Origin: Oopsacas minuta
Lineage: Eukaryota; Animalia; Porifera
Reading direction: 5' to 3'
DNA length: 64,000 nt
Assembly (NCBI GenBank): GCA_024704765.1
Contig: JAKMXF010000024.1
Coordinates: forward strand, 25,218-89,217
Of the stretch, positions 54,231 through 59,363 are shown in pieces. A program made the position numbers and the translations under genes. Position 1 is the first letter of the stretch. Each line of letters begins with the position of its first letter. Under the pieces are notes generated by a model. That model saw nothing but the letters and a program-made list of their open reading frames with translations, did no database searches and was not told the origin of the DNA.

Positions 54231-54329
54231 TTATTATTATTATTATTATTATTATTATTATTATTATTATTATTATTATTATTATTATTATTATTATTAT
54301 TATTATTATTATTATTATTATTATTATTA
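54231..54329. repeat. (TTA)33 microsatellite at the element 3' junction
   Basis: Perfect trinucleotide array, 99 nt. Confidence 0.97.
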
Positions 54330-54774
54330 ACTAAAGAATATATGTAGATTTAATAGTAGTAGACAATAACATAATTTGTTTCGCTGGCTATTTATCCAGC
54401 TCATCAGTACAAACACAACTATAGTACTAAATATAACTGATTGCTGCTATTCTAAGGTTTGAAGGAACATTCTAGATTTCTGAGTAACAAAGGATGATAA
54501 AGCGTATATGAGCTTACTAATATTATTTATGGGAGTTACTATATAAAGTGGATTTGAGCAATGGTGGTTTCTGAAAAAGTTGATTGCTGACAGGCTATGT
54601 AATCATGTTTGGTTTAGAGATGATCATTTGAATTTTCTGAACTAGTATATTCTAAATCTGTTGTAATTGTGGTATTGATTGTGACATCTGGAGTATTATC
54701 GGGTTCTTCGTTAGGTGGTTGACTAATAGTTTCGTAGAAAGGTTATTGAGTCGTAAAGATTTGTCGTATACTAC
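54330..54774 (-). repeat. Solo pseudo-LTR (copy 1), about 8 substitutions relative to copies 2 and 3
   Basis: By-eye alignment with 54837-55281 and 58788-59232. Confidence 0.92.
54354..54430 (-). ncRNA. Type I hammerhead ribozyme (copy 1)
   Basis: Minus strand GUA-CUGAUGA-GCUGG(AUAAAUAG)CCAGC-GAAACAA(AUUAUGUUA)UUGUC-cut-UAC. Predicted cleavage between 54362 and 54361. Confidence 0.9.
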
Positions 54775-54836
54775 TATTATTATTATTATTATTATTATTA
54801 TTATTATTATTATTATTATTATTATTATTATTATTA
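54775..54836. repeat. (TAT)~20 array between pLTR copies 1 and 2
   Basis: 62-nt perfect array. Confidence 0.97.
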
Positions 54837-55281
54837 ACTAAAGAGTATATGTAGATTTAATAGTAGTAGACAATAACATAATTTGTTTCGCTGGCTATTT
54901 ATCCAGCTCATCAGTACAAACACAACTCTAGTACTAAATATAACTGATTGCTGCTATTCTAAGGTTTGAAGGAACATTCTAGATTTCTGAGTAACAAAGG
55001 ATGATAAAGCGTATCTGGGCTTACTAATATTATTTATGGGAGTTACTATATAAAGTGGATTTGAGCAATGGTGGTTTCTGAAAAAGTTGATTGCTGACAG
55101 GCTATGTAATCATGTTTGGTTTAGAGATGATCATTTGAATTTTCTGAACTAGTATATTCTAAATCAGTTGTAATTGTGGTATTGATTGTGACATCTGGAG
55201 TATTATCGGGTTCTTCGTTAGGTGGTTGACTAATAGTTTCGTAGAAAGGTTCTTGAATCGTAAAGATTTGTTGTATACTAC
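54837..55281 (-). repeat. 3' pseudo-LTR (copy 2) of the full-length element
   Basis: Contains the last codons of ORF2 (SSIQQ...NDHL*) and the 3' UTR. Appears identical to copy 3. Confidence 0.93.
54861..54937 (-). ncRNA. Type I hammerhead ribozyme (copy 2)
   Basis: Same core as copy 1. Predicted cleavage between 54869 and 54868. Confidence 0.9.
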
Positions 55282-57406: not shown

Positions 57407-58749
57407 GGAATATCGAACGTGGCTAATGATGGGAGTGGTTTTAGGGTTAGTGTTTGCTGTGTCCATATAGAGTTCTCTGGGGCTACTTCATGGGTGCAAT
57501 TTCTGGCTTTACATTCTCTAGCATTTGGGTCTGGACAGACTCTTTCCGTTATATGGCACAATCTATCTGGAAAGTGCTTTGAGCTGTTTTGTAGATTTCT
57601 GGGCTTTCCGCATTTGGCGCACATTCCATATTGTGAGCAGGTTTTTACTAAGGCGTATCTAATTGCTTTTTTGGTGTCTTCGTGATGAGGATTTTCGGTT
57701 GTGTTATAGAATGATGCTTGTTTGTTTAAGGATGGGGATAGGGGGCAACCATATCGTTCTGTGTGGTTTGGGTGGTCTAGAGTTATGACTTTGTATAATT
57801 CTTTGAAGTTTTCTCTAATATTTGCTGGGAGACTAAGAGCAATAGTATCCACGTCCTTTTTGGTTGCTTGTATGTGGATGCTTTCCATGTGCTTTTGTTT
57901 AGCACCAGCTAACATAGCTGATGCATTAACGCAATGAGTACAGGGATACTGAGTATTTGGGCAAGGTTTAATTTTAGGAATGAACTTGAAGGGCTGTTTT
58001 CTTGCTGTGCCAGCGTCTGTACCGGCAATTTGAGCATAGGTGTGGGTTTTTGGGCCTTGAGCAGCTTTAGTTAATAGTGGATGGGTAGATAGGCGTTGGA
58101 TAACTATTGATTTGAGTATGTTTTTGTGGAGTTCATAGAGTTCTAGCTCTGCTAGAGATTGGACGAGCACTAAAGTTTCAATTACATTTTGGAGGGCTGG
58201 ATGTTTGAACATAGGGGCTAGGTTTGCCACTTCTGGATTATTTGCTTGGAAGGTTTCTCTCTCGCCATTTTGAAGTACTAATTCTGATAGGCCTAAGGAT
58301 GATGCTTTAATGAGATACGGATTTTGTTGTTCTGAAGTTGAAGTATAGAGCAGCTCTTCTGGTATTGGCTTATCAGCTGCTTCCAGGTAGGCTGCTAGGA
58401 AAGTGTCCGCTAAGAGATTCTTAAGATTGTTAGGGATTGCTTGCCTGATTTGTTGACACAAAGAGGCTAATTCTGGGTGTTGTTTTAATTTCTGGGCCGG
58501 AACAATAGTGGGAGGGAGATTCTTTCCTGATGCAATCTGTTGTGCATCCTGGATAATTGGATGTTGTTCGGTTGTGATAGATAGATGTTGAGAGCTATCC
58601 TTTTGATTTGGATTTTGATTCCTTGGTTGTGGGCCAAAAGGTCTACCGCTTCTAGTACGGTATGGGCTAGTGTGGGTGTCACGCCAGTTTTGACCGACGG
58701 ACCGCCCTCGGTGTCCCCTAGAGGACCCCCGTGGATTATATGTTGCCAT
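57397..58749 (-). CDS. PLE ORF1, 450 aa: Arg/Gly-rich N-terminus, helical middle, Cys/His-rich C-terminus (Gag-like, putative nucleic-acid binding)
   Basis: Intact ORF inside the element, starting 38 nt after the 5' pLTR. MATYNPRGSSRGHRGRS; CPNTQYPCTHC; CAKCGKPRN...HFPDRLC; CPDPNARECKARNCTH. Confidence 0.85.
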   Translation of the reverse strand: MATYNPRGSSRGHRGRSVGQNWRDTHTSPYRTRSGRPFGPQPRNQNPNQKDSSQHLSITTEQHPIIQDAQQIASGKNLPPTIVPAQKLKQHPELASLCQQIRQAIPNNLKNLLADTFLAAYLEAADKPIPEELLYTSTSEQQNPYLIKASSLGLSELVLQNGERETFQANNPEVANLAPMFKHPALQNVIETLVLVQSLAELELYELHKNILKSIVIQRLSTHPLLTKAAQGPKTHTYAQIAGTDAGTARKQPFKFIPKIKPCPNTQYPCTHCVNASAMLAGAKQKHMESIHIQATKKDVDTIALSLPANIRENFKELYKVITLDHPNHTERYGCPLSPSLNKQASFYNTTENPHHEDTKKAIRYALVKTCSQYGMCAKCGKPRNLQNSSKHFPDRLCHITERVCPDPNARECKARNCTHEVAPENSIWTQQTLTLKPLPSLATFDIPNF

Positions 58750-58787
58750 AGTCTACGGTTATTGTTTTGACTATATAGGCTATATCA

Positions 58788-59232
58788 ACTAAAGAGTATA
58801 TGTAGATTTAATAGTAGTAGACAATAACATAATTTGTTTCGCTGGCTATTTATCCAGCTCATCAGTACAAACACAACTCTAGTACTAAATATAACTGATT
58901 GCTGCTATTCTAAGGTTTGAAGGAACATTCTAGATTTCTGAGTAACAAAGGATGATAAAGCGTATCTGGGCTTACTAATATTATTTATGGGAGTTACTAT
59001 ATAAAGTGGATTTGAGCAATGGTGGTTTCTGAAAAAGTTGATTGCTGACAGGCTATGTAATCATGTTTGGTTTAGAGATGATCATTTGAATTTTCTGAAC
59101 TAGTATATTCTAAATCAGTTGTAATTGTGGTATTGATTGTGACATCTGGAGTATTATCGGGTTCTTCGTTAGGTGGTTGACTAATAGTTTCGTAGAAAGG
59201 TTCTTGAATCGTAAAGATTTGTTGTATACTAC
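58788..59232 (-). repeat. 5' pseudo-LTR (copy 3)
   Basis: Direct repeat of 54837-55281 at a 3951-bp offset. Confidence 0.93.
58812..58888 (-). ncRNA. Type I hammerhead ribozyme (copy 3)
   Basis: Same core. Predicted cleavage between 58820 and 58819, 70 nt upstream of the ORF1 AUG. Confidence 0.9.
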
Positions 59233-59363
59233 TATTATTATTATTATTATTATTATTATTATTATTATTATTATTATTATTATTATTATTATTATTATTA
59301 TTATTATTATTATTATTATTATTATTATTATTATTATTATTATTATTATTATTATTATTATTA
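59233..59363. repeat. (TAT)~43 array at the element 5' junction, followed by a single N at 59365
   Basis: 131-nt perfect array. Confidence 0.95.

Follow-up and report, generated by a model that had tools for sequence, protein, structure and literature searches.

A putative two-ORF, endonuclease-bearing Penelope-like retroelement with a predicted -1 frameshift junction in the sponge Oopsacas minuta

Introduction

Does a Penelope-like element (PLE) with its own endonuclease carry a second ORF ahead of its polymerase, and how would the two frames be expressed? Among eukaryotic retrotransposons no class is less well understood than the PLEs, which are also the closest mobile relatives of telomerase. 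Canonical endonuclease-bearing (EN+) PLEs have one ORF in published accounts (Craig et al. 2021, PMC8557442; Frangieh 2024), whereas a first-pass annotation of a 64,000-nt stretch of the genome of the glass sponge Oopsacas minuta, hereafter the window, read one of its loci as an intact EN+ PLE with a Gag-like ORF1. The core of that reading stood up to the checks made here: judged from its sequence, the locus is probably an autonomous EN+ Penelope-like retrotransposon of O. minuta from a deep, sparsely sampled-looking lineage, with a probability that we put at about 0.75. Below, W denotes the copy in the window, L001-L011 are related genomic loci and P-numbers are protein matches.

Results

Layout of the element

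The element lies on the minus strand and has a repeat period, and thus a unit, of 3951 bp. Along that strand the order is (AAT)44, a 446-bp pLTR, a 37-nt leader, ORF1, ORF2, a pLTR, (AAT)21, a third pLTR and (AAT)33 (Table 1), with the ORF2 frame at -1 relative to ORF1. Every feature listed in the first-pass annotation was found in its place on this strand, including the 3951-bp unit with identical pLTRs, whose shared length came to 446 bp and not 445, and open frames for a 450-aa ORF1 and a 760-codon ORF2 with an RT domain.

Table 1. Positions of the element and its parts in the window, listed 5' to 3' along the minus strand
Feature	Position	Strand	Basis
(AAT)44, 5' flank	59233..59363	-	TRF, 100% matches; sequence
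pLTR_A, 5'-truncated upstream partial copy	58787..59232	-	identical to pLTR_B over 446 nt
Type I hammerhead motif of pLTR_A; core 58820-58865, predicted cleavage after GUC at 58820	58810..58875	-	core pattern
5' leader of full-length unit, 37 nt	58750..58786	-	sequence; edge set by pLTR comparison
ORF1, 450 aa	57397..58749	-	open reading frame; alignment of homologues
Putative -1 programmed frameshift signal	57357..57403	-	U-run and hairpin; same arrangement in L003, L004, L007, L010, L011
ORF2 frame, 760 codons and stop	55121..57403	-	carries, from the N-terminus on, CCHH motif, PLE-type RT, CxxC linker, GIY-YIG-like domain
N-terminal C-x2-C...H-H motif of ORF2, ahead of first ATG	57272..57322	-	alignment; C28 invariant
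RT core, Pfam RVT_1, aa 303-416	56156..56497	-	E 2.3e-8
CxxC of RT-EN linker, C596/C599	55607..55618	-	alignment
GIY-YIG-like endonuclease core (MIY ... MYVGQAGATRR ... H ... E)	55307..55540	-	Pfam, AF2/Foldseek, collinear with P0138
In-frame (AAT)5, Asn5 inside EN domain; pLTR begins right after	55283..55297	-	sequence; pLTR comparison
pLTR_B, 3' end of full-length unit; hammerhead core 54869-54914	54836..55281	-	repeat comparison, core pattern
(AAT)21, between pLTR_B and pLTR_C	54775..54835	-	TRF
pLTR_C, solo 5'-truncated tail copy; hammerhead core 54362-54407	54329..54774	-	repeat comparison, core pattern
(AAT)33, 3' flank	54231..54328	-	TRF

The upstream pLTR_A contains the last 51 codons of ORF2, the stop codon and the 3' UTR, and it runs directly into the 5' end of the full-length unit, with no intervening microsatellite. 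Its one mismatch to pLTR_B is at position 447, past the shared end, and pLTR_C differs from pLTR_B at 8 positions (98% identity). A pLTR formed by a partial tandem copy, with the upstream copy abutting the full unit, was also seen in L002, L003, L004 and L010. One N occurs at 59365, next to the (AAT)44 run, and a region with long microsatellites and pLTRs in tandem is difficult to assemble.

L001, a second O. minuta genomic copy on another contig, is 99.4% identical to W. Because this copy is so similar and the pLTRs are identical, the element, which is apparently intact, appears to have been copied recently, as the first-pass annotation had proposed. L001 lacks the 3' pLTR and the end of ORF2 and is therefore not a simple full insertion.

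Hammerhead motifs in the pLTRs

A hammerhead core of the form CUGAUGA / helix II / CGAAAC / GUC occurs once per pLTR on the sense strand (3 matches against 0.01 expected). The proposal of a hammerhead in every pLTR was thus borne out for the core motif in 3/3 pLTRs; the Rfam model HH9 matched the pLTR_C copy only, at 19.6 bits, below its gathering threshold. The core is conserved in L002, L010 and L008, with covariation in helices II and III, and HHR-like cores were present in all lineages. The putative ribozymes may cut multimeric RNA into 3951-nt monomers, each with both complete ORFs.

ORF1 is conserved upstream of ORF2

The ORF1 protein starts with a basic, RG-rich stretch and is helical in the middle; its C-terminal half is conserved and rich in Cys and His. 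A homologue with 26-46% identity stands directly upstream of ORF2 in every examined relative with an intact ORF2 5' end, and this was also the case for L003, L004, L005, L010 and L011, which were found via ORF2 alone. The Cys/His columns of the alignment are invariant, and pN was 0.21-0.50 compared with a saturated pS of 0.72-0.78, indicating purifying selection. Between L003 and L004, ORF1 and ORF2 have diverged alike, by 50% each.

Pfam assigned no family to any of 12 ORF1 homologues at E values up to 10, and ORF1 had no match among PDB sequences. The AF2 model of ORF1 was of low confidence (pLDDT 51.6) and its Foldseek matches were meaningless. Homology to Gag in sequence or fold (capsid, zf-CCHC) was found by none of Pfam, PDB and Foldseek. 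The description of ORF1 as Gag-like consequently holds for its position upstream of a polymerase ORF and not for its content, because no domain or fold was detectable. The Cys/His-rich ORF1 protein probably binds or chaperones the RNA of the element, which is our guess.

The ORF1/ORF2 junction resembles a -1 frameshift signal

ORF2 lies in the -1 frame in six lineages (W/L001, L010, L003, L004, L007 and L011). Every junction has a U_UUY motif, UUU or UUC after U, followed a few nucleotides downstream by a strong hairpin. The U-run of W, at 57399-57403, reads AAU UUU UAG in the ORF1 frame, and its hairpin has an 8-bp core (57382-57389 / 57367-57374) plus outer pairs, with a folding energy of -21.9 kcal/mol (z -1.9). 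The L003 hairpin reached -23.4 kcal/mol (z -3.7), and L010 has a 12-bp GC stem, with -37.6 kcal/mol for the 105-nt fragment that was folded. The B lineages share an 11-bp stem in which 3 pairs have changed on both sides, as compensatory changes do. Spacers of 6 nt precede the stem in the B lineages and L010, and in W 7 nt separate the slip motif from the core stem. The L004 junction contains the canonical heptamer C_CCU_UUC; W and L010 have no canonical X_XXY_YYZ site. In these two only the Phe tRNA can re-pair, and the codon that follows the Phe codon in the ORF1 frame is a stop; both points speak against frameshifting.

A -1 frameshift signal was taken to consist of a slippery site, a spacer of 5-9 nt, a stable structure after it and a following frame that has no start of its own, and at the sequence level the junctions show all four. 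The first ATG of the W ORF2 is codon 81, at 57160, and codons 1-80 are conserved, including the CCHH motif; in L004 about 43 conserved codons stand ahead of the first ATG. One extra T in the run of L005 fuses the two frames and codes for exactly the predicted trans-frame peptide. All junctions also look like a 3' splice site, a Y-tract followed by AG|G, and in L003 and L010 an in-frame ATG lies within the ORF1/ORF2 overlap.

The junction had been noted from the window alone as frameshift-like, and the conservation of both the -1 relation and the downstream hairpin strengthens that view: ORF1 and ORF2 look as if they are joined by programmed -1 ribosomal frameshifting. Ribosomes would translate ORF1, and a fraction, stalled by the hairpin, would slip by -1 on the Phe codon (U_UUY) just before the ORF1 stop. 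Slippage would, in the manner of retroviral Gag-Pol, yield a fused ORF1-ORF2 protein some 1209 aa long, and the ORF1 protein would be made in excess over the fusion.

ORF2 encodes a PLE-type reverse transcriptase and a probable GIY-YIG endonuclease

The PLE-type RT motifs DKG, PKxHK, RPxV and Y/FxDD are visible in the ORF2 alignment, and the wider PLE RT spans roughly aa 163, where the DKG motif lies, to aa 560. Remote matches outside the family carry DKG / YGLPKIHK / RPIV / YIDD, and two of them, P0135 and P0138, have both RVT_1 and GIY-YIG. An hhalign comparison of the ORF2 profile with P0138 gave 96.3% probability (E 1.7e-9) over 463 collinear columns, in the order DKG, RT, CxxC linker and GIY...YVGQT.

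The linker of the relatives has the form Cx4-5CxxC; Cx5CxxC or Cx4CxxC was found in L003, L004, L005, L006, P0015, P0038 and others, and it aligns with the linkers of P0135 and P0138. In W the first Cys is replaced and only CxxC is kept, and one Cys before GIY that most relatives have is also absent. Since P0017, which is 67% identical, shares both changes, the two missing Cys look specific to the lineage and not like a defect.

The first-pass annotation had placed a CxxC linker before a C-terminal GIY-YIG domain. The linker stands, and the domain is a probable GIY-YIG on three concordant but weak signals, each non-significant alone. Pfam PF01541 matched at E 0.1 and 13.3 bits, below the cut-off of 22.6, and covered positions 3-76 of the 78 in the profile; an hhalign comparison between the family EN and the ENs of canonical PLEs gave E 0.005 but a probability of 7%; and the AF2 model (pLDDT 64.7) had a beta-beta-alpha-beta-alpha order with the I-TevI catalytic domain as top Foldseek match (E 0.87). 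The Y, Y-V-G, R, H and E residues of W are at the expected places; conservation of the YIG, Arg and Glu positions is poor among the B lineages. The stretch between the GIY and YIG strands is free of cysteines in all family members, in contrast to the canonical P0135 and P0138.

Microsatellites and a proposed insertion route

The runs of 44, 21 and 33 AAT units agree with the first-pass description of (AAT)n at the junctions, and the remaining 59 kb of the window contain one other AAT-type run of at least 5 units. Whether other copies have the same flanks had been raised as a check: the A-lineage copies W, L001, L002, L008 and L010 all have (TAA)n borders, and L006 is bordered by (TA)n. Runs of this kind are rare elsewhere. 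An insertion bias towards microsatellites is an already known PLE trait (PMC8557442). The (AAT)44 run is presumed to be either the insertion target or a microhomology partner for the 5' junction.

For a Poseidon PLE, published work describes reverse transcription that starts inside a multi-copy RNA and a hammerhead that is assisted by protein (PMC11167929). In the route that we propose for the present element, multi-unit transcripts would start in the upstream pLTR and the endonuclease would nick (TAA)n microsatellite DNA. Target-primed reverse transcription would then begin at an internal site of the multi-unit RNA, the pLTR end ...AGUU. The cDNA would often end at the in-frame (AAU)5 tract of ORF2, where microhomology with the (AAT)n target would seal the 5' junction, and ending there would yield both solo tails and the upstream pLTR.

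The family is isolated

With 127 matches in 1.84 billion proteins the family is isolated, and in an unlabelled tree of the family and other PLE matches it sits on a long stem with 100% support, apart from every other match. Its units measure 3.95-4.9 kb, and it blends a Cx5CxxC linker of the Neptune/Nematis type with a Hydra-like lack of cysteines inside GIY-YIG.

Discussion

Comparison with known elements

Among the closest known elements are Neptune and Nematis (Arkhipova 2006; Craig et al. 2021, PMC8557442), which share a PLE-type DKG RT, a C-terminal EN, probably of GIY-YIG type in the family, after a CX2-5CxxC linker, pLTRs, hammerhead motifs and microsatellite insertion. As those clades are described, they have one ORF, whereas the family has two with a -1 junction; it also lacks the Cys pair between GIY and YIG, and the target is (TA)n in Neptune and Nematis but (TAA)n in the sub-lineage of W. 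With the Hydra clade (Craig et al. 2021) the family has in common a C-terminal EN that lacks internal CCHH cysteines, canonical hammerheads and insertion into microsatellites, and in both cases the hosts are early-branching aquatic animals. However, Hydra elements are <3 kb, with a single ORF, DKT, RWK and a CxCX5C linker, in contrast to the larger two-ORF units of the family with DKG, no RWK and Cx5CxxC.

An extra ORF upstream of the RT ORF is also present in the EN-minus Athena/Terminon elements of bdelloid rotifers. Athena lacks an endonuclease, is telomeric and ends in reverse-complement telomeric repeats, whereas the family has an EN-like domain, targets interstitial microsatellites and ends in (AAT)n, not (ACACCC)n. 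One green-algal element with an N-terminal EN and a gag-like upstream ORF is known (Craig et al. 2021, PMC8557442). This type, Chlamys-2_cBra (Craig et al. 2021), is likewise an EN+ PLE with a canonical hammerhead and an upstream ORF rich in zinc-binding residues, but its EN is N-terminal, its host an alga and its zinc-binding motif a zf-CCHC knuckle, while the family has a C-terminal EN and an ORF1 without a Pfam match.

Outside the PLEs, retroviral and LTR Gag-Pol frameshifting and the ORF1 proteins of non-LTR elements are similar in having a structural or RNA-binding ORF1 upstream of a polymerase ORF with a -1 overlap. Slip site, spacer, stable RNA structure and a presumed excess of the ORF1 product are further likenesses to Gag-Pol. 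The family differs in that it has neither LTRs nor homologues of Gag, protease, RNase H or integrase, and its integration would presumably proceed by target-primed reverse transcription with a GIY-YIG nickase.

Alternative explanations

Very little weight falls on the possibility that the tandem pLTR and microsatellite arrangement is an assembly artefact. The lone N, the long and perfect microsatellites and the identical repeats would agree with it, but the order microsatellite, pLTR, body, microsatellite, pLTR, microsatellite, pLTR is repeated in L002, a different locus in an independent assembly, and (TAA)n-flanked pLTR pairs are also present in L010. Still less credible is the idea that ORF1 is a piece of a host gene picked up by the element, or an open frame arisen by chance in W, and that the element is otherwise an ordinary single-ORF PLE. 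Although ORF1 has no recognisable domain, the homologues upstream of ORF2 in all relatives with an intact 5' region effectively refute chance capture, which had been named as a danger to the two-ORF interpretation. The homologues were found in four further assemblies and on another O. minuta contig, the loci do not look like one orthologous region, as their flanks do not match, and the purifying selection and invariant Cys/His columns of ORF1 also speak against capture. It is improbable, if less starkly so, that ORF2 expression relies not on frameshifting but on splicing to a subgenomic mRNA, or on an internal ATG reached by reinitiation or leaky scanning. Splicing would draw on the polypyrimidine tract and AG|G at every junction and on introns known in PLEs (PMC8557442, Fig. 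1 legend), but its phase would vary between homologous junctions (1 in W and L004, 2 in L003) where the -1 relation is constant, and the strong hairpin conserved 6 nt downstream, which shows compensatory changes, belongs to frameshift stimulation and not to splicing. The overlap ATG of L003 and L010 and the codon-81 ATG of W would suit internal starts; leaky scanning would have to pass many ORF1 ATGs, and internal initiation in W and L004 is ruled out because 80 and about 43 conserved codons precede the first ATG. The clean joining of the frames by the 1-nt insertion in the L005 T-run speaks against all of these routes.

Programmed frameshifting in a real element might still be nothing new: the family could belong to a catalogued clade such as Neptune or Nematis with its upstream ORF and frameshift already recorded, which we regard as unlikely. 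According to the legend of Fig. 1 in one survey, some type of PLE can have an ORF1 set apart by a frameshift that involves a pseudoknot (Craig et al. 2021, PMC8557442). The paraphyletic Neptune group is little characterised, one of its killifish members has a short ORF1 of no assigned function, and the Cx5CxxC linker is common to Neptune, Nematis and the family, as microsatellite targeting is to PLEs already known. The PLE type with a frameshift and pseudoknot is probably Athena. Against prior description stand the single-ORF accounts of canonical EN+ PLEs in Craig 2021 and Frangieh 2024, the long, fully supported stem in the unlabelled tree, and the absence from the family of the two Cys between GIY and YIG that are called universal outside Hydra (Craig et al. 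2021, PMC8557442). In the literature consulted, the two-ORF frameshift layout was not found described for endonuclease-bearing PLEs, nor was a paper found that pairs 'Penelope-like' with 'ribosomal frameshifting', and 'sponge' and 'Porifera' are absent from the main text of Craig et al. 2021, a major PLE survey (PMC8557442).

A bolder reading, which we offer tentatively and with more doubt than belief, is that the family constitutes a new major EN+ PLE clade centred on sponges. The obligate -1 frameshift fusion would be ancestral in it, ORF1 would be a new zinc-binding RNA chaperone, and the target would have shifted to (TAA)n, with the in-frame AAT tract as a microhomology handle for 5' joining.

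Implications

A conserved ORF1 and a -1 frameshift in an EN+ lineage would, if true, mean that the Gag-Pol logic of expression also arose or persisted in PLEs. Should the ORF1 and frameshift be homologous to those of Athena, a Gag-Pol-like two-ORF plan would be older than the divergence of the PLE clades. If the (TAA)n target is real, the range of PLE microsatellite targets would extend to a trinucleotide repeat. The element would be a compact, apparently intact natural subject for the study of PLE ribonucleoprotein assembly, and the family adds to the documented diversity of PLEs in sponges, an early-branching phylum.

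Layout of the element and its copies

The window carries one copy of the element on the minus strand, and its features are listed 5' to 3' on that strand in the table. The first-pass annotation had described a 3951-bp unit with a 450-aa ORF1 and a 760-codon ORF2 frame, and all of these were confirmed in place, with a repeat recurring every 3951 bp, which is also how long the unit is. The pLTRs, which are partial tandem copies (pseudo-LTRs), had been called apparently identical over 445 bp. No difference was found between pLTR_A and pLTR_B over 446 nt, and pLTR_C was changed at eight positions. 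The (AAT)n claimed for every junction was present as runs of 44, 21 and 33 units, and only one other AAT-type run of at least 5 units occurs beyond the element in the 64-kb window. A lone N at 59365 adjoins the 5' (AAT)44 and may mark assembly or polishing uncertainty at this border. In the surroundings, an N-terminally extended histone-H4-like ORF (60563-60961, minus strand) lies within 59496-61663, a region that also holds direct repeats around this ORF (59575-59705 / 61286-61416 and 59924-60044 / 61543-61663, 87% identical) and a (ATATACCAG)9 array at 60269-60350. A 420-aa ORF with NHL-type repeats (52233-53495) adjoins the 3' microsatellite and looks like an ordinary gene of the host.

Features of the window copy (W) and sequences of the ORF1/ORF2 junctions in W and related loci
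Feature	Position	Strand	Remarks
(AAT)44	59363-59233	minus	5' border of W
pLTR_A	59232-58787	minus	446 nt
Leader between pLTR_A and ORF1		minus	37 nt
ORF1	58749-57397	minus	450 aa
ORF2 frame	57403 to 55121	minus	760 codons; first ATG is codon 81; -1 frame relative to ORF1
In-frame (AAT)5 of ORF2	55297-55283	minus	
pLTR_B	55281-54836	minus	last 51 ORF2 codons, stop and 3' UTR
(AAT)21		minus	between pLTR_B and pLTR_C
pLTR_C	54774-54329	minus	
(AAT)33	to 54231	minus	after pLTR_C; 3' border of W
Junction, W			AAU UUU UAG (ORF1 frame)
Junction, L010			CAU UUC UAG (ORF1 frame)
Junction, L003 and L007			CCU UUU UGU UAA (ORF1 frame)
Junction, L004			CCU UUC UGU UAG (ORF1 frame)
Junction, L011			CCU UUU CAC UAA (ORF1 frame)

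The O. minuta hypothetical protein LOD99_10552 is 99% identical to ORF1 of the window copy, and its gene on contig JAKMXF010000041.1 (GCA_024704765.1) is followed by an ORF2. Over 3.96 kb, this locus, L001, matches the window copy at 99.4% identity. It stops in the internal AAT tract, which has grown to 11 units (L001:9784-9877), and has neither the 3' pLTR nor the final 51 codons of ORF2. Such an ending could mean that sequence between two microsatellites was deleted, or that the internal AAU tract primed the insertion. At an unrelated locus, the decayed copy L002 (assembly ERZ25072730; 85% identical) repeats the whole layout, including two downstream tails with (TAA)n between them. O. minuta also harbors a second sub-lineage in the form of the decayed copy L012 (P0019, KAI6658717.1). 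The flanks of the window copy matched none of the fetched loci, and thus none of these offered an orthologous or empty site. Collecting genomic copies, as had been proposed, showed that ORF1 and the -1 junction are kept in diverged relatives and that (TAA)n borders are kept in the A lineage, to which the window copy belongs. A scan of JGI metagenomes with ORF2 returned one remote locus. The remote RT-like locus L009:147-3406 (OMLO01018852.1; 24% identity to ORF2) has overlapping ORFs at 147-1433 and 1352-3406, the second in the -1 frame, and Pfam gave no match on either. Transposase genes lie near family copies on sponge contigs, one hAT-like (L012:1-1460) and one THAP9/TNP-like (L002:12431-14584).

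ORF2 as a PLE polymerase with a probable endonuclease

On the sequence evidence, ORF2 of the window copy is a PLE polymerase. Pfam recognized RVT_1 alone, and HMMER, run against 1.84 billion representative proteins, gave 127 matches, 79 at E up to 1e-10 and 24 of these at E up to 1e-30. Most of the 79, including all of the 24, were 30-91% identical and resembled family fragments. The remoter matches (E about 1e-9 to 1e-3) carried the canonical PLE signatures DKG/DKS, YGLPKIHK, RPIV and YIDD, and the motifs of the family itself are GxxFQ, DKG, PTFYFKxKTHK, RPVVNH, FYPSTPH, GIPMGLPLAPELA and YFDD. Among the remote matches, P0135 and P0138 have RVT_1 together with a GIY-YIG domain at the C terminus in Pfam, and P0118 and P0124 are about 1000 aa long with no endonuclease detected. 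The family profile aligned to P0138 over 463 collinear columns (96.3% probability, E 1.7e-9), spanning DKG, the RT, the thumb and the CxxC linker up to GIY...YVGQT. Among PDB sequences, the ORF2 profile found no TERT, and its sole match, to the Drt3a RT, was marginal. In a quick, unlabelled tree, the family formed a clade with 100% support on a long stem, apart from the other PLE matches.

The C-terminal domain of ORF2 is probably a GIY-YIG endonuclease (EN), as suggested by three weak, concordant signals. The Pfam GIY-YIG profile matched the EN region at E 0.1 with nearly the entire profile covered, and hhalign of the family EN against two canonical ENs gave E 0.005 at low probability. The AF2 model (pLDDT 64.7) showed a beta-beta-alpha-beta-alpha topology with the I-TevI catalytic domain as the top, non-significant PDB match (E 0.87), and the GIY-YIG domains of UvrC and Slx1 further down the list. 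In the window copy, Tyr, Tyr-Val-Gly, Arg, His and Glu are at the expected places. Of the CxxC linker and C-terminal GIY-YIG noted in the first-pass annotation, the CxxC stands and the GIY-YIG is probable. Most relatives have a Cx4-5CxxC linker like that of Neptune and Nematis. One Cys of the linker and another ahead of GIY are missing from the window copy and also from P0017, which is 67% identical to it, so these losses look like lineage traits and not damage. No family member has a cysteine pair between GIY and YIG, in contrast to the clades outside Hydra, in which Craig et al. 2021 describe these two cysteines as universal.

ORF1 as a conserved component

Comparison of homologues indicates that ORF1 is a conserved component of the element. 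Copies without ORF1 had been considered beforehand, and instead a homologue lay directly upstream in all five informative loci that were reached through ORF2 alone (L003, L004, L005, L010 and L011; 26-46% identity, E from 1e-32 to 1e-127). L006 is uninformative here, being 5'-truncated inside ORF2. A profile search with ORF1 found family members only, and Cys, His, Pro and Trp columns in the C-terminal half of ORF1 are invariant. The pN values of 0.21-0.50 were far under the saturated pS values of 0.72-0.78; due to this saturation of synonymous sites, pN and pS are given for most pairs instead of dN/dS. The divergence between L003 and L004 was the same for both genes (ORF1, 50%; ORF2, 50%).

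Pfam gave no match for ORF1 and 11 homologues at E up to 10, and the ORF1 profile likewise found nothing among PDB sequences. An AF2 fold was discarded (pLDDT 51.6; Foldseek matches to meaningless helical bundles). Because ORF1 matched nothing in Pfam or PDB and no fold match was usable, Gag-like refers here to position and presumed role; the conserved upstream position upheld that earlier label, and homology to Gag did not. P0118 and P0124, which are EN-minus PLE-like proteins, have long N-termini; kinship of ORF1 with these was rejected, as comparison revealed no relation.

A putative -1 frameshift between ORF1 and ORF2

Comparison across lineages argues strongly for a programmed -1 frameshift, which would give an ORF1-ORF2 fusion. 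The frameshift-like junction seen in the window recurs in six lineages (W/L001, L010, L003, L004, L007 and L011), with ORF2 in the -1 frame and a hairpin downstream. The ORF1 and ORF2 pieces were analysed separately. At every junction a U precedes the Phe codon, so that the Phe tRNA can re-pair one base back, and L004 has the canonical heptamer C_CCU_UUC. The hairpin is stable in every lineage and begins 6 nt on in L010 and the B lineages, which include L003 and L004; in the window copy there are 7 nt to the core stem. The B-lineage stem of 11 bp keeps its pairing despite two-sided changes at three positions, and the A-lineage stem sequences are entirely different. In L011, about 770 nt (L011:4215-4989), probably an insertion, separate the frameshift site and hairpin from the remaining ORF2.

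The main rival to frameshifting is splicing, and every junction does also resemble a 3' splice site. However, splicing would have to proceed in different phases at homologous junctions and would leave the conserved hairpin without a role, making this explanation improbable. In L005, one more T in the run places ORF1 and ORF2 in a single fused frame, and the peptide encoded there is precisely the one that a frameshift is predicted to yield; L007, its sister copy, has five Ts and two frames. Codons 1-80 of ORF2 in the window copy, before the first ATG, are conserved, including a C-x2-C...HH motif.

Hammerheads, ends and microsatellites

Each pLTR was expected to contain a hammerhead, and one core (CUGAUGA, 4-bp helix II, CGAAAC, short helix III, GUC) was found in each, giving three pattern matches compared to 0.01 expected by chance. 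With Rfam, the gathering threshold gave nothing at any locus, and the E-value mode gave only HH9 in the window (19.6 bits, below threshold) and, in L003, only a spurious bglG match on the frameshift hairpin. Motif and covariation scans were therefore used. In all lineages the sense strand carries cores close to the 3' end of the pLTR, with helix II differing in sequence and self-complementary throughout. Between the window copy and L010, helix II changes from CUGG/CCAG to GCUC/GAGC with pairing kept, and helix III also differs, yet pairs. Cuts at the GUC of pLTR_A and of pLTR_B would release a 3951-nt RNA with both complete ORFs.

Every unit has ...AGTT followed by (AAT)n as its 3' end, and the upstream pLTR abuts the 5' leader with no gap, as expected if reverse transcription starts internally on a multi-unit RNA. 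For a Poseidon PLE, an internal start has been demonstrated in vitro (PMC11167929). Partial copies in W and L010 begin, at the 5' end, at the AAT-rich tract in the EN coding region, suggesting that microhomology with an (AAT)n target would seal the 5' junction. Copies of the A lineage are always bordered by (TAA)n (W, L001, L002, L008 and L010), L006 by (TA)n, and on the flanks of B-lineage copies there are arrays that derive from the pLTR of the copy itself. Long tandem arrays occupy L003:1-5971 and 11401-18226 and L004:1-5805 and 11385-18013. The upstream array has at least 17 units of 340/341 bp from the 5' part of the 1.1-kb pLTR, and the downstream arrays are unrelated (789-bp in L003, 283-bp in L004). 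The B-lineage arrays may be satellites that formed from PLE tails, a process that has been discussed for animal retrozymes.

Comparison with known PLEs

EN-minus Athena elements are probably the PLE type in which a frameshift with a pseudoknot can separate ORF1. In their legend to Fig. 1, Craig et al. 2021 describe such a separable ORF1 for some PLE type, and a gag-like upstream ORF occurs in one green-algal Chlamys family. A microsatellite bias is known in PLEs, toward (TA)n for Naiad and Hydra and (CA)n for Chlamys, and a role in mediating it has been proposed for the linker. A killifish Neptune has a short, unassigned ORF1. Among the papers searched, none links Penelope-like elements to ribosomal frameshifting.

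The overall interpretation of the window copy as an EN-bearing PLE with a Gag-like ORF1 was supported with three qualifications: Gag-like is only positional, GIY-YIG is probable, and the undescribed status is provisional with respect to Repbase/Dfam. Canonical EN+ PLEs are single-ORF elements (Craig et al. 2021; Frangieh et al. 2024), whereas this family has two ORFs with a -1 junction.
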